DNA from: Wallemia ichthyophaga EXF-994
Taxonomy: Eukaryota; Fungi; Basidiomycota
Assembly: GCF_000400465.1 (NCBI RefSeq)
Contig: NW_008806296.1
Location: 82,749 to 114,748, forward strand
Length of the DNA stretch: 32,000 bases
Direction: 5' to 3'
Positions within the stretch are counted from its first letter, which is position 1; each line of letters begins with the position of its first letter. Below, in pieces: positions 2,705 through 26,193 of the stretch. The notes beneath the pieces were generated by a model, which saw only the letters and a list, made by a program, of their open reading frames with translations, searched no databases and was not told the DNA's origin. A program made the position numbers and the translations under genes.

Positions 2705-5271
2705 TTATACTTCTGGCGCTGGTGAATATGTCGACGGTGAGTTTGTGCTCGGTGGACCCGGTGAGCCAACTCCCACTGCTCGTATGTGTGTCATCTGTGG
2801 CGCTGGGTAAGGTACCAGTGGTGTCATCTGAGGTGAAGGTGATGGGTATGCTGCAAAAACTGTTCCTCCTCCTTGGCTTGGTTGTGATTGCTGTGATTGC
2901 TGTGGTGTTGGTGTTGTTGATTGATGTTGTGGGTGTCCAGGTGGTGGCCCTCCCATTGGCGGCCTGTTTTGCATATTAGGTGAAAATTGTGGCATATATG
3001 CTTGTCTGGGTGCTTGCAATCCTGCCGCCATCGCAGCTTGGAACATTTGCGCAGGTGGTGGTCCTTGACCTGGTTGCATTTGTGGTCCAAATCCGATCGC
3101 TTGTCCTGAGGGTGGTCCAGCTATGAATTGTGGTACCATTCCATATGGTCCTGGGCCTGGCCCTGGTGGTGCCCCAGGTGCTCCTGGTGCTCCCATTGGT
3201 CCTCCTCCATTTGGCATTGGTGACTGTCCGCCAAATGGAATTCTATAGTAGTACGGCTGCCCTTGACTCATTGCCGCTTGTGCTTGTGCTTGTGCTGCGG
3301 CTTGTGCTTGTGCAATCACCATATTCTGAGCTGCAACAGCTTCATCAGGTGAACCATAATCATTGTTTCCATAGTACTGATTACTTGGAAACCTCGATTT
3401 ATATGACTTTCCACTGAATTGCCAGTGTGGTCCAATCTGTTGTGCTTCCATTACTGTTTGATTCTTGAATGGATTGAAATCTTCCTTTACGTGCAGCCCA
3501 GACAAGCCACGTTTAATTGGCTTTGTACCAAAAAATGGATTTTTAATAGGCGTCGGAGCGCTAGTACTAGTAACTTGAGAAGTTGATTGTGATGGTGGTT
3601 TTGGTGATAGGTTGTTAGATGATCCACCTGGTGTAAAAGACATGGCATTTGGATTAGGTTTGAATGAGAAGGCTTTTGGATTCAAAGATTTTGATCCACC
3701 TGCAGTTGATGTGCTAGCTTGTGATAAGGCAGGTGAAACAACTGAACGGCGATCGACAGGAGGTGAACCTGGAGATTGATTGGTAGCCGGTTGTGAGACA
3801 TGACGATTGCGCTCAGCTCTGACAGCCTTTACGCGCTCAGGGTTGAAAGGCGGAATCTTGGGTATGTTCATGTACTGCTTCAAAGAAGGTGACTTGGATT
3901 GTTTGAAGTCGTCCGGCTTTGCATTTGACTTGGTTGAGGTGTCAGAGATTGATTTATCAGATTCCTTCTCCTTCTCCTTTCTCTCATTCTTTGCAACGAT
4001 ACCTGCGATATCTTCTGGCATATCAGTCTTGAGCTTGAAAGACTGACCAAACTTGATCAAATCAGCAACTGTAGATGACTTTTCTTGGTTTACGAGTGCT
4101 TGCTTCTTTTGTTGTAAGCGCTCTTTTTCATTTGAGACAAAAGCTCTAAAGTCACCAATAAGAGAAGGGTCCGAAGGTTTTGTGGGCACTTTCTCATGAG
4201 GTAATTGCATTTGAACTTGGGATTTTGGAGCGGTGGGTGGCTGAGGCTGTTGTTGTTGCTCTGGTTGACTGGGTTGTTGTTCTTTTTGCTGCAATGGCTG
4301 CTCTGGCTGTTGCACTGGTTGTTGCACTGGTTGTTGCAATGGCTGCTCTTCTGGTTGCTGCAATGACTGCTGTTGTTGCACCTTCTGTGAAGCTCTACGT
4401 GCTTGTGGAGGAACATATGCATTTGGACCTCTTGTGACGCCAGAATACTTTTCTTCCTCGGTTAAAGCCACAGACTGACCTCTTTCTTCATTAACGTGAG
4501 CGTTTGAAGATTGCTGGTTAAGAATTTCTTTTGCCAGTTTATCAGCCTTCTTCTCGCGTTCTTTGTAGTCATTTCCCGACCTATCGAGCTTTGTAGTGTA
4601 CATTTCCTCATTGTAGTTTGTTTGTAATCCAAACATCTGTTCGTTTGCCTTGAATTGATCCCAGGCGCCACCTTGATGATTATCTTGTGTCTCCACAGAC
4701 TCATTACTTGGATAATCATCCGCCCAGCTCAACGACGCAGAAGCGTCTTGTGAGGATGAAATGATAGCAGGATCATCCGGTAAGACGTCTGGCGTCCAAG
4801 GCTTTAGCTCGCGTTCGTTGGTGTGCTTAGCTTTAGAGATATCTGTATCGACTTTGAAGGCTTTTGGAGTTGTGAGATTGAGTGAATTGTAGCACCACTA
4901 ATACCACTCACAATCAGCCTTTATTTGCTCCAAGTCGACCAAGTCTTTGAGCTGTACTTTTGTGTGTTTGGTGTCCTGCTTAAGTGTAATCTCATGATTG
5001 GCTGAAATGAGTGTCCCTCTGAGTTTCTCGTTTTGACGCGTGGAGATGACGACTTGCTTGCCCTAAAAGCGTGTTAGATTGGAATATACGTCATCATATA
5101 CTCACTATCGCTCCTTGTAACTTATCTGCGCTCTTATTATGGGTTCTCCAGCTCTGTCTCCTGGACCTTGTAAGCAGGTGGCTGGTACACAGCCCAATAA
5201 TAAACCCACCTTGCACCATTGTTAAATGAATTGTTGTTGTTTCTCTTTCCCCCTCTGCTCGCTTGATTCAT
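2705..5271 (-). CDS. PBP1: Ataxin-2/Pbp1 poly(A)-binding-protein interactor (Lsm + LsmAD + low-complexity Q/P/G C-terminus)
   Basis: Exons 5271-5210, 5166-5106, 5062-4912, 4860-2705 (introns 43, 43, 51 nt) give 2430 nt in frame. Motifs: FKVDTDIS; LsmAD WDQFKANEQMFGLQTNYNEEMYTTKLDRS; PAM2-like LNPKAFSFKP. Confidence 0.88.
4250..4380 (-). repeat. Coding tandem repeat encoding QQPVQQPVQQPEQPLQQ within PBP1
   Basis: Imperfect 12-nt units (ttgttgcactgg) are visible at about 4308-4338, inside a Gln/Pro-rich stretch. Confidence 0.75.
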
Positions 5272-5352: not shown

Positions 5353-8300
5353 CTAATGTCCACTTCTTCCAATAGCCCGTGCTTCGTCTACTCTCGGTAA
5401 CTTGTACTCCCCTTCCCCAGTTGGTGCTCCCAGGAACTCCGCTTTGACCAACCACGCGACGTATAATCCCAACAAAGGCATATCAACCGTCGTCTTGACC
5501 TTCTCATCCGCCTTGGACTTCTTGATCAACTCTTGTGCATTCTTGTCATCCAGCGATGCACTCTTGGTCGACGTAGGCAGGTCATCCAAAACAAAGTGCA
5601 GCAATGGGAACAATGCGTTATCTCCAACTTCCATTACGTGCTTCTCCAGCTCTGACCTCCACACAAGATAGTCACTCGTCTGAACTTGATATCCGTATTT
5701 CTCCAGACATCCTAATAAGTCTGAGTAACGCACAGGTGGTCGAGCTGTTACGTGGACAACTCCATTACTATTTCCGTCTTCAACCCTACTCAGCATAGAC
5801 AGTGTTGTAAGTCTGGCGACGTGATCAACGGGTACCATGTTAACAAAGTTGTGGATATTTGGCACTTGTCCGAGTTGTACGCATCCCTTGACTAACCTCC
5901 ACAGAAAGTCATCCGTGTTTGTCACTTTTGCCTCATTAGATTGTTTTCATTAGTAGATCACCTCACCTACCTGCTGACTCTGAATCTCCAACAACGTACC
6001 CCGGTCTAACTATCGTACAGGCCAAGCCTCGCTTCGTGGCCTCCATCAAAAGCTTCTCGGCGACCCACTTGCTCTGTCCGTAACCAGTGCCAAGTCCCTC
6101 GCGAGCGCCTTCAAGATCATCTGACTCGAGCACACCTGAAGATTGACCGGACAGTGTCAATTCATCAGAAAGCTTGATGTAATGTTCAGTATCGAGTGCG
6201 GAAGTTGAAGACACAAATGACAACGCCTTAGCCTTCTGGTTGGCTGCCAGTTCAATAGCAGTCATTGTAGAGAGAACGTTAGCCGAACGAAGCTTGCCGT
6301 ACGAGTAAACCCAGTGCACAAATGCACCATTGTGAATTATGGCGTCAGAGTCACTCGAAAGCCTATTCCACTCCTTTTCGTCTAATCCAAAATGCTTAGA
6401 TTCAAGATCACCAACTACTGCCTCAACTCTGCCCTGCTTGACCCACGTCTCATCCCATGAATGACGCGCTGATCCACCCTGTCTGAGTCTGTTGATACCG
6501 TCCTCGTTCGATTTAGCACGAACAACACAGATTACTTTATCCACTCTGTCTCCACGCAACTTGAGCAGATCACGCAGAACAAAAGCACCAAGGAAACCAG
6601 TGGCACCAGTCAAAACCACAGTAAGCTTCTTGTTGTTCAAGTCTGATGGTAGTGCTGGGTACTTGTCAGCCAATCGAGGTATGAGAGAATCGAAATCGTT
6701 TCCGTAATGAACCTCATCCGACGCTGCTTTGTCATCCTTCTTCACACCGACAACGTCAGCATGCAGTCCGAGATCGGCTGCCTTCATTCCTTCAATTGAG
6801 TAGGCCAATCCTTCAATAGTTGGCTGCTCGAACACCAATCCGAGCGGTGCTTCAACGACGAGAGCTTTTCTTATCTCGAAAATCAATCGAGTCGCCAAAA
6901 TGGAGTGACCACCTAAATCGAAAAAGTTGTCATCTAAAGCGATAGATGATGGTGCTGAAGGAAGAAGATTCTTCCAGACATCGTGGATAGTTTGTTGAAT
7001 TGGAGTAAGCTTACGGTCGTCACCCACGTTTGTACGCGGCGTAAGAATAGCCGTATCTGGGAATGGCAGAGCTGGCTTGTCGATCTTACCATTTGGATTG
7101 AGTGGCATGCGCGTGAGTGGGATGAAAACTGAAAAATCTAGTCAGCATCATTCAAATAAAATACTAAGACTCACTAGATGGGATCGAATACGTTGGTAGC
7201 TTGGTTTTGAGATGCTCGCGCATGTTCTTGATAAGCTTACGGTAACGCTTCAGTCCTCTAGCAATCTCCCTTGAACGATCATCCTGAACGTCGTGACCTT
7301 CATCTTCGTCGTTACTCATGTATCCTTCAAGCTCGCTTGTTTCATTTGGAACAAAGTACGACACAAGAACCTTTTCCTCGTCCTTGTCACGTCTGACGAG
7401 AGTAACATTGTTTCTTACCAATGGATGAGCTGAAAGGTGAGTATCGATCTCACCCAACTCAATTCTAAATCCACGGATCTTGATTTGGTCATCTGCTCTA
7501 CCAGTACACTCTACCAACCCATCTGGGCCATATCTACCTAAATCGCCAGTTCTGTACATTCTGTCACGAATACCTTTCCAATATTTACTGTAGTCTGGTT
7601 TCGTTTCGGCTATGGTATCTCTCCTTTCAACGCCAAAGCCAAACCAATTCTCGGTGAATTTCTCCTTAGTAGCATTTGGATCTAAATAACCCTCTGACAG
7701 ACCACCTGAACGGACGTAAATCTCGCCGACTTCACCAACACCACATAGGACGTTCTTGTCCTGGCGATTAACAACAAGTAACTGCACGTCAATCATTCCC
7801 TGACCAGCTGGCATTATATCTTTTTGTCTACCGAGGAAAGAAGAATTAGCGTTAACTGAAGGGATAGAGTAGTATGATACTGCTCTTTGGGTCTCAGTTG
7901 TACCGTACATGTTATTTATTTGAACGTTATGAGCTAAAGCTTGCAAACGAGTACAGTCACGTTTAGTGAGGACATCACCAACAAAGAAGGCATTCTTGAG
8001 AGACGGTATGTGTCTAACGGCCTGAGCTGACAGTAACTGACCCATCGCTGGTGTCAAGTGTGTGACTGTGACTTGGGAATCCGCCATCCACTCAGCAAGC
8101 TGACCTGGTGTGCCAATATCTTCAGACGTTGGAACGTGCAACTCAGCACCGAGGAAAAGAGGTGTGAAGATATCTCTTTGGATAGGGTCGTGTGCGATAC
8201 CACTAAGCATAGTGAACTTTTCATCCTTTGTCAAATTGAAACGCTCAGACATCCAAGGGAAAAAGTGGGTGAGTGAGTAGTGACGACCCATCACACCCTT

Positions 8301-9888: not shown

Positions 9889-12213
9889 ATGAGGGAAAGC
9901 AATTTCTCTAATCCAGCACAGAACAGAGCATCGTGTGTTGTTTCCACGTCTTTCTACGACCGCAAAGGTGAGCACACGCTCTAATTACACGCAGCCCACA
10001 CGGCTCACACAGTCCACACGATCAGCACTCGATGCACGCGATCCAGTAGCACTCATCAACTCACTCACTAACCTCCAATACCTCACCTCCGTTTCCCAGA
10101 AAGTCAGAGATATCGTGGCGTATGACGGTGGAATTGAGCGACTTGTGAGGATCATGAAGTGGGCAATGTCTATTTTGCTTGTCCCAGGCGCTTCTGCAAC
10201 TCCAACGCCTTTTCTACTCGCTCCCGATCGTGGTTCACAGCCTCTGCAAGGCGTGTATGACAGGCAGATTCTTTATATCTGGACTTTATCATTTCAGTGT
10301 TGCGTAAACATTGGCGTCAGGGGTTCTGAAGAGCTCCGCACAAAGGTCGTTCAAGCTGGTGTGCTTGATGTCGCAGGCGCTATCCTCGGGACTTGGAAAG
10401 CTTCAATGGATAGGTACAGATTGAAAAAGATTAAGGAGTATCACCTGCACACGATAAGCTTGAGAGGTGGGTCTTTGTCGACTACCTTGGTTTTCTAGAA
10501 TCGATTACTAATACCTGTCCATAGCCTGGCTTAATGATCAGAATAATCGCAAGGCAAGCAAATTGTCCGAATCTGCTGAGCCCTCTGCAACACCGGAATC
10601 TACCCTTCTTGGTGACGAGGAGCCGATCACGGGTCTCGGACAAGTGCATGTATCACAAGTGTCACCCATGCCACCCGCCGTTCCGAACAGCACTCCAATT
10701 TTCACAGATCAGGTTAATGAGCACGACCAGCCTGAGCCATCGACATCAACTCAGACTGAAGCATCAGAATCAAGGTCGTCGAGTGTCGTCCAATCGGAGG
10801 ATGACGTTGAGGAACAACCTGAGACAAACAATTACGTAAGATCGAGATCGGGGACAGTTGTTCCATCTAGTCAACAGACCATCATAAATTCCCAACCGAC
10901 GCCTGCAAATACTCCACAAGTAGTTGCAGGAATAGAAAATCAGCAACAGGAAACACCTCAACCAGGGCAAACGATGCAACCAGCAGCAGTAGCACAACCC
11001 ACCCAGCCGACACAACCTACGCAATCTACACTACCAACACAATCTACCAACTCATCACCCGTTACTCGCAGACCAATTGAGCATATAGAATATTTCAGGC
11101 CTGAAGAGAATACTATATACCGTGAAGAGGACGTTCTACTTGCTTTACAATTACTAGCATATATCTCAAAATACCCACACATAAGAGAAGGATTTCAAGC
11201 ACCTTCACGCGCATGGCAAGTTGGTAGACCATCATTTGATCCTGAAGAGAGTCCAATTGACAGACTTAGCTATAGAGATCATTATAAGAGGAACTTATTC
11301 TATATCGTCGAGTCATTCACCTATGAAGGACACATTGATGATCCTACATCGATATACCTCCCTTCAGAGATCAGGTATTGGGCAGGAGTAACGATGCGGA
11401 ATGCGTGTCGGAAGCATGAGTCATTTAATGGTATTAGGCAATGTGCCAATGTTGCATGTGGCAAGTGGGAGACATCTCCCAAGGAGTTTGCCAAGTGCAG
11501 GATCTGCAGAAAGGCCAAGTACTGCAGTAAGGAGTGTCAAAGCAGAGCGTGGCGCGTAGGACATAGATTCTGGTGAGTGAAAGAGTGATGATTAGGAATA
11601 ACTAGGTTAATATTTGAAATTTAACTGCAGGTGTCAAACACGATCGGATATGACGAACGAGAGCGACAACTATATAGCGCCATACCTGGCACGCGATAAT
11701 CAGCAGACGCCGCGCATGCGACCAGAGGCACAACCAACGCAGCAGATGCCTCAACCAGCATCACCACTCACCACATTCAACCAGATAAATCGTGATATTG
11801 ACAACTGGACGAATATGGGTGTAGAGACGGATACGACGGGAAACATGACGAATATGGCCAACATGACTAACATATTCGAGGATGATTTCAGGGGCTTCAC
11901 TGGGATGGATGGGGGTGGAAATGCACAGCAGAATCAATTTCAACTAGCGCCTTTGCGATTTGATGAGAATAATCCAGCCGCGGCGTTTAACACGGTGACG
12001 ACGGCGACGGCTGCAGCTGCAGCTGCAGCTACGGAAGATACACCGTCGCCGCCTACACAGTCAGTGTCGCCCGCATTGACAGCTTCGATTAGTGACGGTG
12101 CTGAAGAACGCGAGAGACGGAACCAAACGCAGGACTATCTTCCTCGCACTCGCTCCGCACTTTCAGAGGTACTCACAGTATCTACTGAAGAGCAGGAGAT
12201 GCAAGTGGATTGA
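9889..12213 (+). CDS. MUB1: MYND zinc-finger protein, Mub1/SamB family
   Basis: Exons 9889-9967, 10026-10466, 10525-11572, 11631-12213 (three 58-nt introns) give 2151 nt. The N-terminus is MRESNFSNPAQNRAS. The MYND finger CANVACGKWE...CRICRKAKYCSKECQSRAWRVGHRFWC is completed across the last intron. Confidence 0.85.
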
Positions 12214-12388
12214 GGGTCAGCCTCCTTTAATAATTTGCATAATAACATTGATAAAGATATAGTAATTATTTCACACATTGATTTAAGATAAAAGACAATT
12301 GAACAAGTAAGATAAGAAACATAAATGAGCATTTCTGCATTTCTGCATTTTTACAAATTAAATAGGCTGGCTTTGCGACATCTGGGTG

Positions 12389-12910
12389 ATGATTTCAAGG
12401 TGGGCAGTACAGCGAAGCGCAAGCCAGTGGAGCAAGCGAGGGAGGGAAAGTAGTGTGCCAGAGGGTTCTCGAGAGTGGGTGAAGAAGCTTCCAGCATTGA
12501 GCAAGAGTATCCCAGAAGATGCAATCGCCATCACGCACACACGTAGCTCGGGCAGTGGGGGGCAGCATGTGAACAAGACGGCGAGCAAAGCAGTAGGGCG
12601 AATGGGAGTGGTACAGGAGTGGTTACCTGCTTATGTGCACACAGCGCTACGAATTGACCCCCACTACGTCCGTTCGAGCGACGCAATCGTTGCAGCAGAC
12701 TCGAGCAGCCGGTCAGCACAACAGAATGCAGCGTGTGTGAGAAGGCGTATTGCGCAAATTATCGCTCATGCTAGCTCCCGCAACATTCCCGGAGATACTG
12801 CCCCAGCCAAGTCGCAGCGTGTAGAGCAGCTCAAGCGCAAGGAAAGCGCGAGCATGGAGAGGCGCAAGAAAATGCACAAGGAAAAGAAACAGCTGAGACG
12901 AGGCGACTAA
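12389..12910 (+). CDS. PTH4: Peptidyl-tRNA hydrolase ICT1/Pth4-like (codon-independent RF-1 domain), probably mitochondrial
   Basis: RSSGSGGQHVNK carries the GGQ motif, followed by SRSAQQN and a basic C-terminal tail. ATG is at 12389. Single exon. Confidence 0.8.
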   Translation: MISRWAVQRSASQWSKRGRESSVPEGSREWVKKLPALSKSIPEDAIAITHTRSSGSGGQHVNKTASKAVGRMGVVQEWLPAYVHTALRIDPHYVRSSDAIVAADSSSRSAQQNAACVRRRIAQIIAHASSRNIPGDTAPAKSQRVEQLKRKESASMERRKKMHKEKKQLRRGD

Positions 12911-12979
12911 TGTACTGAACCGATAAAGTGATATAGATGAACATGTAAGTAAATTAGTACACGACTATTGCGATATTCT

Positions 12980-13912
12980 TTACAACGCCCGGTCATTCTC
13001 AACAGCTTCCCGCACCAGCTCGACAAAGTCAGCAGGTTTCTCCGTGTGCACAAAGTGGCCAGCGTTGAGTGTATGTAGCTGCATATTGGGGAAGAAGCGC
13101 TTGGCGAGTGGGATATTCTTGTGGTTGAGATAACTGCTATGCTCGCCCTTGATAAAAGTTGTAGGTTTATCAAACACTGCATTGCTCTGCTCGCCGAAAG
13201 GGAAGTCACCGATAGCGTCTATAGAATCGCGGAGGATATCGACAGGGATTCTGAATTTGTAGAAGCCAGTATCCTTATTCATCTCCGCGTTAGTGAGAAG
13301 GAATTGTCTTATAGCCATATTGCTTTCGACCTTTTTGAGCATCTCGTCAGCCTCCTTCTTGGAACGCACGTTAGCGTGTTCGATGTCTACCATAGTCTGC
13401 GTATAAGCGAGGAACTCTTCCGATATGGATGCTCTCTGCGGCGACATATCAGCGACGATGAGACGACGGAGGAGATGCGGCTGTGCTAGCGCTAACGCCA
13501 TCACGACTTTACCGCCCATCGAATGTCCGAGGAGGGTGACGTTGTGGAGGTTGTGCGATTCGATGAATTGAGATACATCCGCTGCCATGTGAGCGTAGTC
13601 GTGAGGCGTTGCGTGTGGAGAAGTGCCGTGGTTGCGCAAATCGAGCGTGTAGATGGAGCTGTGCGTTTTGGTTGCCATGTTACGCGCCAACGTCCGCCAG
13701 TTCTGCTTGGATCCCATCAGTCCGTGGCAGACTACAATCGGCTCAGAGTCTAAACTCCCCTCTATTTTCTCATATGCGAGGTTGACCGTGGAGAGTTGTC
13801 TAAGGTGAGAGTGTGTTTTGAGTGGCACAGTTGAAGTGGCTGCTATGAATCCTCTACATGCTCCTCCTCTAAATGCTGCCCTATTTAACGCTGATATAGT
13901 TGACAGTATCAT
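12980..13912 (-). CDS. Alpha/beta-hydrolase, ABHD11/YbfF-like, with a probable mitochondrial presequence
   Basis: Motifs: HGLMGSKQNW, DLRNHGTS, nucleophile LGHSMGG, AGHFVH. The first ATG is at 13912 and is followed by an R/S/T-rich N-terminus. Confidence 0.88.
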   Translation of the reverse strand: MILSTISALNRAAFRGGACRGFIAATSTVPLKTHSHLRQLSTVNLAYEKIEGSLDSEPIVVCHGLMGSKQNWRTLARNMATKTHSSIYTLDLRNHGTSPHATPHDYAHMAADVSQFIESHNLHNVTLLGHSMGGKVVMALALAQPHLLRRLIVADMSPQRASISEEFLAYTQTMVDIEHANVRSKKEADEMLKKVESNMAIRQFLLTNAEMNKDTGFYKFRIPVDILRDSIDAIGDFPFGEQSNAVFDKPTTFIKGEHSSYLNHKNIPLAKRFFPNMQLHTLNAGHFVHTEKPADFVELVREAVENDRAL

Positions 13913-14029
13913 GACGCCGTACAAAAAAGACTGAGTGTGATGATGCAATGCGAAGATATTTAGAAAAACACGAAAAATACCAAGATAATGCAAAGAGATG
14001 CTAAGAATAAGCGTAAAACTCAGTGAATA

Positions 14030-14773
14030 TTAGCAAACCAAGTAACTAAGAGCTTTTGAGGTATTTGAGTTAATATTGAACCAGCTGGACGCTAAGCATG
14101 AACCAGCAGTAGTGGGCTGACTGAATGCAATCTGGTTAGGAGATAGAGTGTAGCCGTAGACTTGATTCTGGGCTATTGAGTTTAGCAGTAAGAGACCTAA
14201 ACGTTGTCTTCTGTGTTTGTTGATTACGTGTATGCGGTGAATAGCAAATTTGACTTTTACAGGTGAGTGAATGTTGATGATAAGATTCGAGTGTGATGCT
14301 TGGGAGTGTAAGCTGTATGCAACATTCCAAGGAGAAGTAATTGCAGAAGCAATAATGTGATTATCGCGTAGAATCATGTAAGATGAAGATTTTACGAGAA
14401 TTGTAGTAGTTAGCGGAGGGGAGTTCAAAGACGCGTTTAACTGATCGTGAACCTGACTTAACGCGTAATATAGTTTCGAATTCAGCTTTATATTATTATA
14501 ATCAATCTTGAGTAGAGTGATATCACCCGATTGATGAATAATTTTGATTGATTTGTTTGGCTTAAGCTTCCAAGTCATACCGTGTACTAAGTTATTATGA
14601 AATAGGTCGTGTAACTTTGATTCCTTCAAATTACCACGCGTGTACTTGAATTGACATGTATTACAAGATATAATACTCATGTTTGATTGACCAAAGTTGA
14701 GATAAGATTGTTTATACCTGTGTACTTCTATGGTCTAATCAAATAACAAACCAATAAACTCCACTTACATCAT
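14030..14773 (-). CDS. ECO1: Cohesin acetyltransferase Eco1/ESCO, minimal form (about 230 aa)
   Basis: Exons 14773-14769 and 14717-14030 (51-nt GTAAGT..CAG intron) give 693 nt. This model restores the PIP-like KQSYLNFGQ ahead of the zinc finger CNTC..HDLFH. The C-terminus has AIHRIHV..RRQRLG and QIAFSQPTTAG. The 5-nt first exon is less certain. Confidence 0.8.
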
Positions 14774-14787
14774 CAAACTTCACAACG

Positions 14788-15083
14788 ATGACCGAGATGT
14801 CAGAGCAAGCCAAACTCGACCAATTTATATCACAAAAACCACAGCAAAAATACAAATTCGATGGAAAGCTGGAGAGTGATAACGTGTTAGTCTGTAGAAG
14901 TGATAACGATTGTATAGAATTGGAGATTAAACGGAATAATATGATTAATATGATGAATGTAAGTGGGTTGATTGATAGGCATAATAACATTTAACCAGCC
15001 AATAGAAATTAAACATGTTCTGTGTTCTACCTCAAGCCCCCACTGAAACTGAAATTGAATGTACCAAACTCCCTTCAGATTAA
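14788..15083 (+). CDS. Hypothetical 82-aa protein
   Basis: Exons 14788-14958 and 15006-15083 flank a 47-nt GTAAGT..TTAAC..TAG intron and join in frame to a TAA. No family recognised. Confidence 0.4.
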
Positions 15084-15115
15084 CGTTCAAACGATCAAGA
15101 TATTAAGTATAAATT

Positions 15116-15939
15116 ATGAGTGGGTGGTATTTGTACGACTAGAACTCAAGGTCTCTAAATGAATAAATAAATAGATGAATTAGTTAAGGAGGAAGTTGAA
15201 GTTGGTCGACTGTAATTGATTTTAACCATTAGACTAACTTTTGACCAAGGTACTTGAATCAATCTATGCAGATGAACTAACTGTTTTATCTGATAATAAA
15301 CTATCAATTAAATTAGACTCAGAGGAAGTTGAAGGTGAAGATACTATTTCAACTAATTTGTCAGTCAATTATACTCCAAAATATCCAGATGAATTGCCAG
15401 AGTTTGAAATTGATGTTTTGGAAGGTGATTTGGGTGATGAAGATGTTCAAAATTTGCACAATGACTTAGTTGATTTGGGTAATGAGAGCTTAGGGATGCC
15501 ATTAGTATTTACGTTATCTTCAACGCTTAAAGATAGTTTATCAGATCTACTTCTCAATAGATTAAAATCAAAGCAACAAGTTGAATCTGATAAGAAGCAA
15601 GCAGAGATTGAAGCCGAGTTGGAGAGAACAAGAGGTACTCAATTAACAATACAAAACTTTAATGAGTGGAGGATTAACTTTATAAAGGAAAGGAACGCCA
15701 AGCTAGAGGAGGCTGAGGAAGCCCAGCTTCAAAAGCTTAATAACAAAGATAGAGAGGAATTGAAGAGATGGAATACAAGGAAATCTGGTAAACAACTATT
15801 TGAGAAGGATACAACGCTAGCAAATAGCGATTCAAATCTCATAAACGTGAATGACAAAGTGGTTGATAAGAGGGAGTATCAAGGTGTTGAAGGAGATGAC
15901 GATGGTGAGCAACTCGTCCAGTTCAGTGATGGGGAATAG
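15116..15939 (+). CDS. GIR2: RWD-domain protein, Gir2/RWDD1-like (DRG GTPase partner)
   Basis: Exons 15116-15119, 15175-15200, 15250-15939 (introns 55 and 49 nt) give 720 nt. Motifs: EEVEVLESIY, YTPKYPDELP, LGMPLVFTL, GTQLTIQNFNEW, SGKQLFE. Confidence 0.82.
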
Positions 15940-16049
15940 GCTAAATTATAAATATATATATCATTCATGGATCCATCGCCAATTATCTCCATTTATCTCG
16001 CTTTAAATCCTTGTACTTCCTTGTTTCCTAACCACCATCAAACAAACCC

Positions 16050-19438: not shown

Positions 19439-20554
19439 TTATGGAGCAAGCAAAGTCTCCAAGAATTCCTTACTAGCTTGACCTGAAGGAGCGCTCTTCT
19501 TAACGTTAGACTTTCTGTTCTTCTCAGACTTGAGAATTTCTTGACGACGCAATGATTGAGCGTATGGGTTAAGTCTGTAAAGAACGTTCTTGTTACGGAG
19601 AGGGTTCTTCTTTTGGGTGAATGGACGCTTAGCCTCCTTTGGTCCCTTTGGTCTAAGGACTGATTGGATTTCATCAGAGTTGATAACACGAGTAATGTCA
19701 GCATTAGCAATCTTAGCGTGTGGGAGGGTGTAGCCAAGCTTTTGAGAAGATGGCTTGTCGAAGGTACCGAAGATTTCATCCAACAATTTGAAAGCACCCT
19801 CAGTCCAGATGATGAATCTACCAATGTGACCACCAGGAGCCAATTGAAGAAGGTTAAGACGACGAACGTTGCAAAGTTCAACACCTGGAAGGTTACGGAA
19901 AGCCTTGCTAAGACCCTTGTCTTCATCGTAGACGACAAGAGGACCTCTACGTTGACGGTAGCGACGGTTACGGTATTTACCCTTACCGGCACGCTTACCA
20001 CGTGAGTTGGAAACCTTGACAACATCGTCGTAAGCATCAACAGACTTGAGCAAGTCAATAGCTTGCTTGGTCTTCTGGATAGACTCGACTGAAGATGGAA
20101 CAACCAATGGAACTTCTTCAAGCTGGTCAACTCTGTGTCCACGTGCCAAAACCAATGAAGGAAGTGAAGATCCGGCCAAAGCGGAAACAACAGCGAAACG
20201 GCGTTGGTTTTGGTTTACCTTGACGTGCCACTTTCTCCAAACACGAGTTGGAGCGAACATGCGACCGCTACGACACATGTTACCGAAGGCGGCTTGACCA
20301 GAACGGTGAGTACCACCACCACCAACACGTGGAATACGGGCAACAGCACGACCAGTACCCCAAGACTCAGCAGAGGTTTGGTGACCAGCTTGTGGGCTGA
20401 CTGCGTATGGTTGACGCTTGTTCTTAGCAATTGACTTGTGAACAGCGGCGACAACATCCAAACGGATTGGTGCAGTCAAAACAGCTGGAAGTGGTACTGA
20501 TGATGAAGAGGCTTCACCACCGTGGACATTGACGGTTGGACGAGCAGCTGACAT
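19439..20554 (-). CDS. RPL4: 60S ribosomal protein L4 (uL4)
   Basis: Single-exon 371-aa ORF with [30 protein letters not shown] and [19 protein letters not shown]. Confidence 0.98.
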
Positions 20555-21815: not shown

Positions 21816-23675
21816 ATGTCGTCGAGCAAGAGAGCACTTGATGGGACGCAGGGGACGGAGGAAGGTTCCTCTAAGCGCTTACGCAGGTGAGTTCGTGTCC
21901 TCTGTGGAGCCATCTGTAACATATGCGGCAGCAACGACAGCAGCGAATCAAGTATTCCGGCAAGCTTATCACAACCACAATCAGTACAGGACAAACTAGC
22001 GGAAGCTAAGGCAAGAGTGGCAAAGCTCACAGCGAGTTGGTCACAGCCAAACCAATCAAAAGCTCCTTCCGCTCCGTCTGCTCCGCCTCAAACACCAGAT
22101 CTCAGCACTTCCATCGCAAAGAGCAGAGCAGAAATTGCACGCAAGACGCATGAAATGAAGCAGCGCACTCAATCGCGCATAAATCCTCATCTTGAAGCCA
22201 ATCGCACCGATACCAAAGCACCCGGAAGTGGTTTAGGCACTACAAGCCATCCTCTATTGGCCAACGCCTCCTCACCAGCGTCCCCAGCGTCGACTAAACC
22301 TGCTGCGCCCAAATTCACGTCTGTAAAGGTGCGTCATCGACGTGATATGAGCGGTGCTAACATTGCACAGGCAAATAAAGGCGCAGCTCCAGCCGCTTCA
22401 GCTAACCCTTACCTTCAAGCAGGAGATGCTAACGAAGTTCCTGCTAAACGCAAACGTCAAATGGTCTTCTCTAGGCCTGGAAAGTATATAGCTCAAGCTG
22501 ATGCGGTACGCAATGAAGTCAGTCCAGTCGAAATCACATGGTCTCTTCTCACAATCATCTACAGGCCAAACTAGAAGAATTAAAGCGTAAAATTGATGAG
22601 AATGCCAGGAAAGCTGGTATCACTGGTGAATCTGAAGCTGCATCTGAGCGTGCTTTGAAGGTGAGCATGCTTTCATATGCTTATTTTTTCTAACGATGCA
22701 CTTCAGAGACCACCTCCGCCTGCTGTTGAGTGGTGGGATCAACCATTGTTAAACAACCCTGAATCATATCCTGATGATGTCCACAATGACTCAAAAATTC
22801 ACTCAGATGACAGTCTCATCACTCTTTACGTTCAGCATCCTATTCCTATACCTGCTCCTCACGACAGATCCAAGTTCGCCGCTCTCGATATGAAGTTGAC
22901 AAAGAAGGAAATGAAGAAGATGCGCAAACAGAGACGACAAGGGGAGTTGAGTGATAAGAGAGATAGAATTAAGATGGGACTGCTTCCTCCAGACCCTCCG
23001 AAGGGTGAGTTACTGATTTTTTGCTGAAGCACTGCTAATTTTACCACTATAGTCAAACTATCAAATCTCATGCGCGTCTTGGCAAGTGACGCCATCCAGG
23101 ATCCTACAAAGGTAGAGGCTAAAGTGCGCAAAGATATGCACAAGCGCAAGGCTGAGCATGAGCGTGCAAATGAGGAGAATAAGTTGACGAGAGAGGAGAG
23201 GCACGAGAAAGACGACAGTAAGAGAGCGGAAAATGAGAAAACGAGGGGTACACGTGCAGCAGTCTTTAAGGTGAGATATATGAATAACCCATCGCATCAA
23301 TTTAAGGTACGCAAAAATGCTCAGCAACATGGCCTGTCGGGATGCTGGTTGCAAAATGACAAGTTTCACTTTATATACATTGAAGGAGGAGAGAAGAGCG
23401 TAAGAGCGTACAAAAGATTGATGACAGTGCGCATCGACTGGACGGAAGAGCCCAGAGGCGGTACCGATAACCAGGACGACCAAGGGGAGATTCAACAGCA
23501 GCAATCGCTGGCTGATAACTACTGTCGCCTTATTTGGGAGGGACCAGCGCGCGATAGACTGTTCAACCGCTTTTTGACTAAGGAAATGCAGAGTGACAGG
23601 GAGGCAAAGGAGTTTCTGGGCGAGTCGCTTGCAAACTACTGGGATACAGCCAAAGTGCACACTTTGGAAGAGTGA
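21816..23675 (+). CDS. PRP3: U4/U6 snRNP protein Prp3
   Basis: Exons 21816-21886, 21932-22328, 22371-22517, 22565-22660, 22707-23004, 23053-23675 (introns 45, 42, 47, 46, 48 nt) give 1632 nt. Motifs: VEWWD, YVQHPIPI, LTKKEMKKMRKQRR, MGLLPPDPPKVKLSNLMRVL, DPTKVE, YKRLMTVRIDW. Confidence 0.93.
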
Positions 23676-23924
23676 TTACAATGATTGGACCAGGCATCTA
23701 CCAAGCAATGCATTGCCTTATTTATTAAGCTTCGGAGTGTCGCGTGAGGTGTGCTCGTCTGACCTCATCCGTAGGAGCTAGATTGCATCAGATAGGATAT
23801 TTTCATGTGGCAACACGCTTTAAAGTGAAGCAGTTGGAGTACTAATTAGTACATAGCAGCCAAAGCTCAAATACTGATGGCATTTAGATTATGAGGTCAC
23901 TTATGCAGGGGAAGCTGACAGCCT

Positions 23925-23930
23925 TATAAG
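23925..23930 (+). promoter_or_regulatory. Candidate TATA element of the metallothionein-like gene
   Basis: TATAAG lies about 55 nt upstream of the first (5'-UTR) intron donor at 23986. Confidence 0.4.
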
Positions 23931-24037
23931 AGATCCAATCATATTTTACAATTCTCTCTACCAAACATTCATCAAACAAATTAAAGTGAGAATTGTAGTA
24001 TTCATCGATGCAGCAGACTAACGACAAACCCTCAGCA

Positions 24038-24229
24038 ATGCAATACACTCAAGTTCTCGTAAACAACGGTTGCTCATGTAGCTGTGAGGATTAATTTTGA
24101 AATGGAGATAAGCACTAACACTTGTTACAGGTGGTGATCAATGCCAATGTAAGGAGCTGAAATAGCAGCGCAAGCTTACCGCCTAACTCACAAACTCCAG
24201 GTGGCCAATCTTGCACTTGTAGCAAGTAA
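24038..24229 (+). CDS. Metallothionein-like peptide, 30 aa, 7 Cys (MQYTQVLVNNGCSCSCGDQCQCGQSCTCSK)
   Basis: Coding exons 24038-24083, 24131-24148, 24201-24229 give 93 nt. Introns 24084-24130 and 24149-24200, plus a 5'-UTR intron at 23986-24035, each have a GTRAG donor, a CTAAC branch point and a CAG acceptor. Confidence 0.85.
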
Positions 24230-24409
24230 AGTTCAAGTAGCACACAGCACTTAGCACGGTCTTGATGACGACGCATCCTAGACCGACATGAAGACTGTCT
24301 GTAATATAATGTATGCTTTTATATTCTTACCTTTTTGCGTGTATGTGATGTATTTATGTCTTCTTGGTGTCTTCTGTGCACTGTCTCTTTCCGTCTTGAC
24401 TACCACCAA

Positions 24410-24751
24410 ATGCCTAGCCACTACAATACCCACGCAAGAAGAAGGCGGAACGCGTTGTGGCGCAAGAACATTATCACCGCCATTCTCTCTCTCATACTAG
24501 GATTTGTCTTGTTCAAAGTGCTCCAAGCTCGTATGAGCGATACGAGACCGCGAGTCACGCATGCGGACAGGTAAGCATGTTTCCTGCACCCACAACACCA
24601 CACTCATACACTCCACTACAGATACTCAAAAGAATACAAATACAGACCAGCGGCTAGCCCAATCGTCACCGAAGTCCTCGATGACGGTACTATCAGACTC
24701 CGTGGCGCAAACCACCACGACACGCATGCCGTGTGGAGAGATGAATTGTAA
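24410..24751 (+). CDS. 96-aa single-pass membrane microprotein of unknown function
   Basis: Exons 24410-24570 and 24622-24751 (51-nt GTAAGC..CAG intron) give 291 nt. A basic RRRR patch is followed by the hydrophobic segment IITAILSLILGFVLF and the tail YSKEYKYRPAASPIVTEVLDDGTIRLRGA. Confidence 0.72.
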
Positions 24752-25100
24752 CCATTCATATATCATTTCATATCCTTTCGTCGCGTTTGTTGGGTAGTGC
24801 TTTGGGCAGGCTTCATGCTGTCATATTGAGTGGTTTTGTGTTTCATTTTTCAATATGACATATCTTAAGACACTCAAAAACTCAATAAAGCTCATCTGAA
24901 TTTAATTCGAAAGATATGAGCGTAGTCATTGTCTTGTCGGAAAAGCAGAGGCAATCATAAAGAACATTAGTGTGGAAACATAACTGAATAAACTCGATTG
25001 TTTTATTCTTATACGAATTTCATTCGCTTCCTCTCCAGCTACAAAAATTAGCCTGCATCAGGTTAACTTCTACCAGAGTTAATTCCTTATATCGCTCTGG

Positions 25101-25115
25101 AAAAAAGGACAAAAA
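25101..25115 (-). terminator. RNA polymerase III terminator (T5, then T6) of the permuted tRNA
   Basis: On the minus strand, TTTTT (25115-25111) and TTTTTT (25106-25101) begin 13 nt downstream of the end of the tRNA 5' half. Confidence 0.7.
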
Positions 25116-25127
25116 CAAATGACACTT

Positions 25128-25205
25128 TACTAGTGATGCGCTACTACCACTGAGCTATATCTGCTGGTTTGCAGATACCAGGGATCGAACCTGGGACCTC
25201 ATCAT
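25128..25205 (-). tRNA. tRNA-Thr(AGU), circularly permuted: 3' half (nt 38-73, 25205-25170), 5-nt linker, then 5' half (nt 1-37, 25164-25128)
   Basis: Reassembled 73-mer: acceptor GCAGATA/TATCTGC plus A73; A-box TAGCTCAGTGG; anticodon stem CATCA/TGATG with loop CT-AGT-AA; variable loop AGGTC; T-arm CCAGG-TTCGATC-CCTGG. Confidence 0.9.
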
Positions 25206-25464
25206 AACAAGTAATCATTCGAATTGAAGAACCGTTATACTACGACTTCTCTGAAAATCACTTATTAATGCCAAAACAATATCTGCCAATAATAATAATT
25301 TAAAATTACCTCAAACCCACTTTGATCCGTCCAATTCATATAAAAGTAGAATAGCAAGAGCTGCTGTTATATGGGAAAAATCTAAATCTTTAGAAATCAG
25401 AATTAAATATTCTTAAGAAATTTGCTGATGGAGGTTCGATCTCCTGTTATCGAGTGCCGCCAGG

Positions 25465-26193
25465 ATGGTGAGTATAGTGGAGCGGGTTCAGGACGACAGC
25501 TAACACCAGCTAGCGTATTGATCATTGTTACTTCTGTTCTGGAAACGTATACCCAGGTCATGGTGAGTTTTGACGACGGAAAGAAGAAGGCTCTAACCAT
25601 AGCGACAGGAACTGCATTCGTGCGCAACGACAGCAAATACTTTAGATTCTGTTCATCAAAGTAAGTTCATTTTTCTACCTCACCAGCCCACCACTAACGA
25701 GCGAGCAGATGCCATAAGAACTTCAAGATGAAGCGTAACCCACGTAAGCTCAGATGGACCAAGGCGTTCCGTAAGGCTGCTGGCAAAGAGATGACGATTG
25801 TGGGTGTCGATCTATGGCTACGACTCACCGTCTAATCACTCACCGCAGGACTCTACACTCGAATTTGAGAAGCGTAGACACGTTCCAGTCAGATACAACA
25901 GAACATTGGTCGCAACCACGCTTAAGGCAATGAAGAGAGTTGGAGAGATTCGCAAGCGTCGTGAAGTTGCATTTTGGAAAAACAGAATGGCAGCCAACTC
26001 GCAAAGGCGCAAGCTGGCAGACAAGAAGGAAGTATCTAAATCTATTAATCTTCTCCCTGGTATCAAAGCAAGCACCAAAGCAGCCGCATCTGCTCAAACA
26101 GCAAAGCAAAAAGTCAAAGTACCAAAGAACAAGTCTTCAAATCTTGCTTCTGCAGGTGGTTCCGGACAAAAGATGACTATGGATATGGACTAA
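25465..26193 (+). CDS. RLP24: Ribosome biogenesis protein Rlp24 (eL24 family)
   Basis: Exons 25465-25467, 25514-25562, 25609-25660, 25709-25799, 25849-26193 (introns 46, 46, 48, 49 nt) give 540 nt. Sequence: [69 protein letters not shown]. Confidence 0.93.

Follow-up and report, generated by a model that had tools for sequence, protein, structure and literature searches.

A conserved, unannotated Wallemia gene with three short coding pieces is predicted to encode a 30-residue metallothionein similar to the Neurospora type

Short metallothioneins of fungi are already known, as are small-exon metallothionein genes of basidiomycetes that were mis-annotated or missed (PMC4755600). The published cysteine pattern of family 8 is X2-[CXC]-X5-[CXC]-X3-[CXC]-X2-C-X3 (PMC4755600). 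CnMT1 and CnMT2 from Cryptococcus neoformans and TmMT from Tremella mesenterica are composed of 7-Cys units from the Neurospora-type pattern, each unit carrying a Cu5 cluster; their genes are divided into many small exons, and it was automatic annotation that misread or overlooked them (PMC4755600). The locus described below adds a previously unannotated gene with a variant arrangement of the ligands and a micro-exon of 18 nt.

Among known fungi, Wallemia ichthyophaga is the most halophilic. This basidiomycete is an obligate halophile with a compact genome of 9.6 Mb, which was annotated with GeneMark-ES and in which the mean intron length is 61 nt (PMC3849046). The locus is on scaffold KE007246.1 of strain EXF-994 (assembly GCA_000400465.1, assigned to this strain in PMC4987115). 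All positions are given in the coordinates of the window, that is, the whole 32-kb stretch of DNA that was analyzed; addition of 82748 converts them to those of the record. The upstream neighbor is PRP3, which is recognized by the Pfam families PRP3 and Prp3_C and has its stop codon at 23675. RPL4 is located at 19439-20554 on the minus strand as a single exon; KE007246.1 was the one NCBI contig with its protein, and 21,116 bases of that record agree with the window at 100% identity. The NCBI annotation of the scaffold has no genes within 23676-24409, the gap that separates PRP3 from the following gene model.

In this gap, three introns and three coding pieces were read on the plus strand. Intron 1 (23986-24035, 50 nt, GTGAGA...GACTAAC...CAG) is in the 5' leader. 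The ATG start codon at 24038 opens the first coding piece (24038-24083, 46 nt), which encodes MQYTQVLVNNGCSCS and the first base of Cys16. Intron 2 (24084-24130, 47 nt, phase 1, GTGAGG...CACTAAC...CAG) is followed by the coding micro-exon (24131-24148, 18 nt), which provides the rest of Cys16, the residues GDQCQ, and the first base of Cys22. After intron 3 (24149-24200, 52 nt, phase 1, GTAAGG...CCTAAC...CAG), the third coding piece (24201-24229, 29 nt) completes Cys22 and encodes GQSCTCSK, with the TAA stop codon at 24227-24229. Donors of the form GTRAG, CTAAC branch motifs located 11-14 nt 5' of the acceptor, and CAG acceptors are common to the three introns. The same architecture is observed in a 53-nt intron of W. 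mellicola RPL4 (GTGAGT...TCTAAC...ACAG), excision of which gives exactly the annotated protein.

The spliced coding sequence is translated into MQYTQVLVNNGCSCSCGDQCQCGQSCTCSK, followed by the stop: a peptide of 30 residues and 3.18 kDa with seven cysteines. Cysteine accounts for 23% of all residues and for 41% across residues 12-28, and every cysteine is within a CxC motif. There is no histidine, and the sole aromatic residue, Tyr3, is outside the Cys domain. These features agree with the general sequence hallmarks of metallothioneins: a mass below about 10 kDa, a high content of cysteine in CxC or CxxC motifs, and few or no aromatic residues or histidines. The preliminary description of this DNA had given intron sizes of 50, 47, and 52 nt, and both the sizes and the junctions agree to the base with direct reading of the sequence. 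The peptide it had proposed, with the seven cysteines grouped as CxCxC, CxC, and CxC and with an SK terminus, was reproduced by the spliced coding sequence; its Cys region is free of aromatic residues, as had been stated, and the longest coding exon is indeed 46 nt.

It should be mentioned that another in-frame ATG is found at 24008, inside intron 1. According to the splice-aware ORF search, retention of intron 1 would give a 40-residue product from this codon, MQQTNDKPSA-MQYTQ.... W. mellicola does not share this extension, since its upstream ATG is followed by AAA TAA and the frame stops after one codon.

Syntenic loci were found by using PRP3 and RPL4 as anchors, and three Wallemia lineages were compared: W. 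ichthyophaga, W. mellicola, and L002. W. mellicola was represented by ten annotated genomes (L003-L012), including CBS 633.66. L002, a Logan assembly of run SRR33769985, is a member of the W. sebi complex, as judged from its identity of 90-98% to W. mellicola. Downstream of PRP3, L002 and all ten W. mellicola genomes have the same gene with the same ATG context. Their coding pieces are also 46, 18, and 29 nt long, the positions and phases of the introns are identical, and the GT and AG ends are intact. The first coding piece was kept in both relatives with synonymous changes. The counterpart of intron 1 is in the same place and reads GT...TACTAAT...TAG, and the lengths of introns 2 and 3 were changed from 47 to 48 nt and from 52 to 45 nt, respectively. 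The peptide of W. mellicola is MQYTQVLVNNGCSCSCGDSCQCGQTCTCGK, and that of L002 ends in ...GQACTCGK. Between W. ichthyophaga and these relatives, 27 of the 30 residues are identical and all seven cysteines are kept. The N-terminal 11 residues, MQYTQVLVNNG, which are free of cysteine and include one tyrosine, are invariant in the three lineages.

The boundaries of the conserved region in the alignment coincide with those of the reading frame: the conserved stretch opens with the ATG and closes with the TAA, which is itself kept, and identity collapses directly 3' of the stop codon. The coding sequences of W. ichthyophaga and W. mellicola are identical at 78 of 93 nt when compared without gaps (84%; 85% with a gapped aligner). 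The corresponding values for the same species pair are 64% in intron 2, 54% in intron 3, 56% in the 300 nt upstream, and 51% in the 170 nt downstream, against a shuffled background of 51%. For this pair, dS was 0.81 and dN was 0.10, which gives a dN/dS ratio of 0.12; over the Wallemia comparisons as a whole, dN/dS ranged from 0.10 to 0.12 and dS from about 0.8 to 1.0. Among the ten W. mellicola genomes, no polymorphic site was observed in the 93 coding nucleotides, as compared with 5 sites in 393 neighboring non-coding nucleotides. This pattern indicates that the spliced reading frame is under purifying selection and, as far as alignment can tell, that it is a translated, spliced gene. The earlier proposal of a hidden gene is therefore supported by selection on the spliced frame (dN/dS about 0.12), with introns and flanks close to random identity. 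The gene is hidden from annotation as well: all 11 annotated genomes examined, one of W. ichthyophaga and ten of W. mellicola, are without a gene call at this place.

Upstream of the gene, a TATA-like box, TATAAG, was found at 23925-23930 on the plus strand by inspection of the sequence and the alignment; W. mellicola and L002 have TTTAAAT instead. It is about 55-60 nt 5' of the donor of intron 1 in both species and might serve as a promoter element. Just 5' of this box, three conserved blocks are present on the same strand within 23887-23922: GAT.ATGAGGT.A (23887-23899), ATGCAGGGGA (23903-23912), and TGACAGC (23916-23922). They form islands of identity shared by W. ichthyophaga and the W. sebi complex within upstream DNA of about 56% identity, and a promoter role is presumed for them. 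The block ATGCAGGGGA contains the STRE-like motif AGGGG, which each of the three species has at -124 to -131. This was the sole recognizable conserved motif. None of the Ace1-type, Mac1-type, and MRE elements searched for upstream was conserved, and copper-responsive regulation is thus without support from the sequence; Yap motifs were not conserved either. The putative non-coding first exon (5' UTR) is placed at 23955-23985 on the plus strand. Its start was guessed at about 30 nt past the TATA-like box, and the context of its donor, AAAG/GTG.G, is conserved. The putative 3' UTR (24230-24330, plus strand) includes an A/T-rich segment, TGTAATATAATGTATGCTTTTATATT, at 24300-24325. AATAAA is present in this spacer in the relatives, and the identity of the region is 51%.

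Several other features of the neighborhood were observed. A second small conserved gene is located at 24410-24749 on the plus strand. It has two exons separated by one intron (about 51 nt), and its product of about 96 residues (MPSHYNTHARRRRNALWRKNIITAILSLILGFVLFKVLQ...AVWRDEL) contains a single hydrophobic helix. Conserved counterparts are found in both W. mellicola and L002. The W. mellicola annotations omit this gene, no Pfam family matches it, and the W. ichthyophaga annotation seems to join it to RLP24 in a 268-residue model (24410-26193). Between this small gene and RLP24 in one W. mellicola genome (L005, 2393-2509, plus strand), there is a tRNA-like element with a weak match to YrlA, a Y RNA-like family (27.6 bits against a gathering score of 69, E = 0.003); ARAGORN was negative for it. 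A similar element is present in L002 at about 8010-8071. Farther upstream in the window, an ORF of 216 residues on the minus strand (14030-14680) has the domains of an ESCO/Eco1 acetyltransferase (Acetyltransf_13, 9.5e-19; zf-C2H2_3). This ORF is absent from the NCBI gene list of the scaffold, the syntenic gene of W. mellicola is annotated, and the surrounding DNA is unusually AT-rich (GC 0.35-0.36 at 14001-16000). At 11407-15939 (11407-15767 in L001), an RWD-domain protein and a protein kinase are annotated as two genes in W. ichthyophaga, encoding 286 and 1000 residues. They are merged into one of about 1130-1150 residues in most W. mellicola annotations, and one of the two annotation models is probably wrong. 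At 4260-4371 there is an imperfect tandem repeat of the unit TGCACTGGCTGT, for which periods of 12, 24, and 45 nt were obtained.

None of the three Wallemia peptides had an exact match in a collection of 15 billion proteins, and the 40-residue alternative product gave no candidates that shared three 5-residue words with it among 5.8 billion clusters. In a scan of metagenomes, a degenerate pattern for exon 1 gave no matches. The contiguous pattern CxCxCGDxCxCGxxCxC gave 68 loci, none of which was Wallemia-like; these were unrelated Cys-rich or simple-repeat ORFs, for the most part prokaryotic. Pfam gave no meaningful match to the peptide or its ortholog. This silence is uninformative because the genuine metallothionein of Neurospora crassa, used as a control, was not detected either. 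A literature search for Wallemia together with metallothionein, and for fragments of the peptide, gave no report of such a gene. Neither metallothionein nor copper is mentioned in the text of the W. ichthyophaga genome paper; its supplementary tables have only the KEGG label "metallothionein expression activator", attached to zinc-finger proteins, and about 200 "novel transcripts" are reported without being itemized (PMC3849046). Wallemia also has a phytochelatin synthase, an alternative route of metal chelation (PMC4410428). As a separate observation, the metagenome contig ODKD01001500.1 (L045) has an ORF of 38 residues at 3677-3793 on the plus strand, MTEKTNCSCNCGDTCSCGSSCTCAHCKTENSQTCSCNK, the core of which is identical to the Wallemia Cys domain at 13 of 17 positions. 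This contig has a low GC content (27-39%), its other frames look fragmented, and it may come from a bacterium with an alternative genetic code; on its sequence, the ORF could be a convergent, metallothionein-like peptide of bacterial origin.

The possibility that GT...AG pairs and TGY codons came together by chance in an intergenic spacer, with no gene present, was evaluated with a splice-aware ORF enumerator, which accepted an ATG start, up to two introns of 40-80 nt with the form GTRNG...CTRAY...AG, and products of 20-60 residues on both strands. In the real 32-kb window, this locus was the sole return from the two strands. Among windows simulated with an order-2 Markov model, 15 of 300 (5%) had some spliced ORF of 20-60 residues with at least seven cysteines; because of this frequency, a spliceable Cys-containing ORF by itself is weak evidence, and the chance explanation gains some ground from it. 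On the other hand, none of 500 simulated windows had at least seven cysteines at a density of 20% or more, at least three CxC motifs, or the spacing CxC-x5-CxC-x3-CxC, and the structure was kept in three Wallemia lineages with a dN/dS of 0.12. The chance explanation is effectively refuted by the comparison of the lineages. An incidental ORF over a conserved non-coding element, such as regulatory DNA or a non-coding RNA, would be in keeping with the very short coding pieces. However, the differences between W. ichthyophaga and W. mellicola are distributed over codon positions 1, 2, and 3 as 4, 2, and 9, which places 9 of the 15 substitutions at third positions. Two of the seven retained Cys codons show synonymous exchange of TGC and TGT, and one Ser codon was switched between codon families, from TCA to AGC. 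Moreover, the ATG, the stop codon, and all six splice dinucleotides are kept, while the introns drift in length and sequence. Rfam gave no match in the whole window or in the gap, with none for 23600-24500 even at E = 1, and ARAGORN gave none in the window, so that an RNA gene has no support. A conserved non-coding element is accordingly considered to be very improbable.

The conservation is evidence of selection on the peptide, and it does not by itself reveal the role of the peptide. The product might be a conserved micropeptide other than a metallothionein: a redox or thiol buffer, a small regulator resembling a zinc ribbon, or a conserved-peptide uORF on one transcript with the small membrane-protein gene at 24410. 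The invariant, Cys-free head MQYTQVLVNNG would be unusual for a simple metal sponge, and the only conserved motif upstream, AGGGG, is of the stress type and not of the copper type. A shared transcript is also conceivable, since the next ATG is only 171-180 nt past the stop codon in both species. Nevertheless, the spacer leading to the downstream gene is unconserved, as its identity is at the 51% level, and carries A/T-rich or AATAAA-type 3'-end motifs. In number, density, and spacing, the cysteines also match the pattern of the family-8 copper thioneins in register, and neither a signal peptide, nor a CaaX end, nor a histidine is present. A micropeptide of this kind thus seems unlikely. Two further candidates were rejected. 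A basidiomycete lipopeptide pheromone precursor does not fit, as there is no CaaX box: the peptides end in ...CTCSK or ...CTCGK, with cysteines at -3 and -5 instead of -4. A secreted Cys-rich peptide was ruled out from the sequence.

The locus is thus best regarded as a genuine, unannotated gene of Wallemia, the likeliest function of whose product is that of a small Cu(I)-thiolate metallothionein; a probability of about three in four is assigned to this reading. A short transcript would probably begin about 30 nt past the TATA-like box and would lose the 5'-leader intron and the two phase-1 coding introns. Its translation would give the 30-residue peptide, which is probably cytosolic because it has neither a signal peptide nor a CaaX end. 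The C-terminal 19 residues, CSCSCGDQCQCGQSCTCSK, which contain the seven cysteines, might wrap around one metal-thiolate cluster. With seven thiolates in 17 residues, a single cluster of about 5-6 Cu(I) per peptide seems the most plausible, by analogy with the 7-Cys copper thioneins of Neurospora and Agaricus and with the 7-Cys Cu5 boxes of CnMT and TmMT. The N. crassa protein reportedly binds six Cu(I) ions. Its role would be to buffer or detoxify copper, and perhaps also cadmium or zinc; weaker complexes with divalent metals also seem likely. A more specialized version of this function is put forward with considerable doubt. The peptide could be a thionein particular to this lineage, with its seventh ligand moved to form CxCxC, a promoter that responds to general stress through the STRE-like motif rather than to a copper sensor, and a head that serves in targeting or partner binding. 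If so, it would be a thiol peptide of salt or oxidative stress, with MQYTQVLVNNG as the targeting or partner-binding part.

With this locus, the annotations of W. ichthyophaga and W. mellicola gain a gene that they lacked, and, judging by the literature search, the class Wallemiomycetes gains its first metallothionein candidate. It is also a clear example of how genes with micro-exons, here 46, 18, and 29 coding nt, elude ORF-based and GeneMark-type annotation. A single 7-Cys unit with a relocated ligand would be a natural variant of the Neurospora type and could inform how far Cu(I)-thiolate clusters tolerate repositioning of a ligand. The present understanding of metal homeostasis is unchanged.

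Comparison with known metallothioneins was made at several levels. A phmmer search against all PDB sequences gave as the top match the beta domain of mammalian MT-2, with NGCSCSCGDQCQCGQSCTCS aligned to PNCSCAAGDSCTCAGSCKCK at a non-significant E of 0.63, and the N. crassa metallothionein (PDB 1t2y) did not appear at E ≤ 10. Significant statistics of homology are not obtained at the database level because the peptide is so short and its composition is biased toward cysteine. The beta domain of the vertebrate protein (human MT-2, PDB 2mhu) can be aligned with the Wallemia peptide without gaps, as CSC..GD.C.C..SC.C, with six cysteines in register. Unlike the Wallemia peptide, this domain has nine cysteines, binds divalent ions, three in number, and forms one protein with an alpha domain, and the likeness may be convergent.

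The basidiomycete proteins CnMT1, CnMT2, and TmMT are long tandem arrays of 122-257 residues, whereas the Wallemia peptide is a single 7-Cys unit. The spacing in the TmMT unit, CXCX3CSCPPGXCXCAXCP, differs from that in Wallemia, and the exons of TmMT are 63-105 bp, compared with the Wallemia coding pieces of 46, 18, and 29 nt.

Family 8 (fungi-I) includes the copper metallothionein of N. crassa and the metallothionein of Agaricus bisporus. Proteins of this family are very short, with 25-26 residues as compared with 30 in Wallemia, and have seven cysteines; they share with the Wallemia peptide the three CxC doublets, the ...SK C-terminus, and the lack of histidine. Agaricus is, like Wallemia, a basidiomycete. 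In a pairwise BLASTP comparison with the N. crassa sequence, which was checked against PDB 1t2y, the Wallemia Cys domain was aligned without gaps and with 9 of 19 residues identical (E = 2e-4 for the single comparison). Six cysteines are in register, the x5 and x3 spacers are of equal length, and the residues that follow the respective CxC motifs are Ser, Gly, and Ser. The likeness to a Neurospora-type copper thionein that the preliminary description had suggested therefore holds, as seen from the gapless identities and from the six cysteines in register with the family-8 pattern. The differences concern the seventh cysteine, the N-terminus, and the gene. In the Wallemia peptide, the second residue of the x5 spacer is an extra cysteine, so that CxCxC arises, and the x2-C near the C-terminus is lacking. 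Its conserved, Cys-free N-terminal extension is 11 residues long, compared with 2 residues in family 8. The Wallemia gene has two introns in the coding region and one in the leader, and its copper binding is a prediction. The three Wallemia lineages all depart from the strict family-8 pattern in the same way, with the terminal X2-C missing and the seventh cysteine inside the X5 spacer. Because the full cysteine pattern is not present, the Wallemia peptide is considered to be a variant of family 8, i.e. family-8-like, rather than a strict member.
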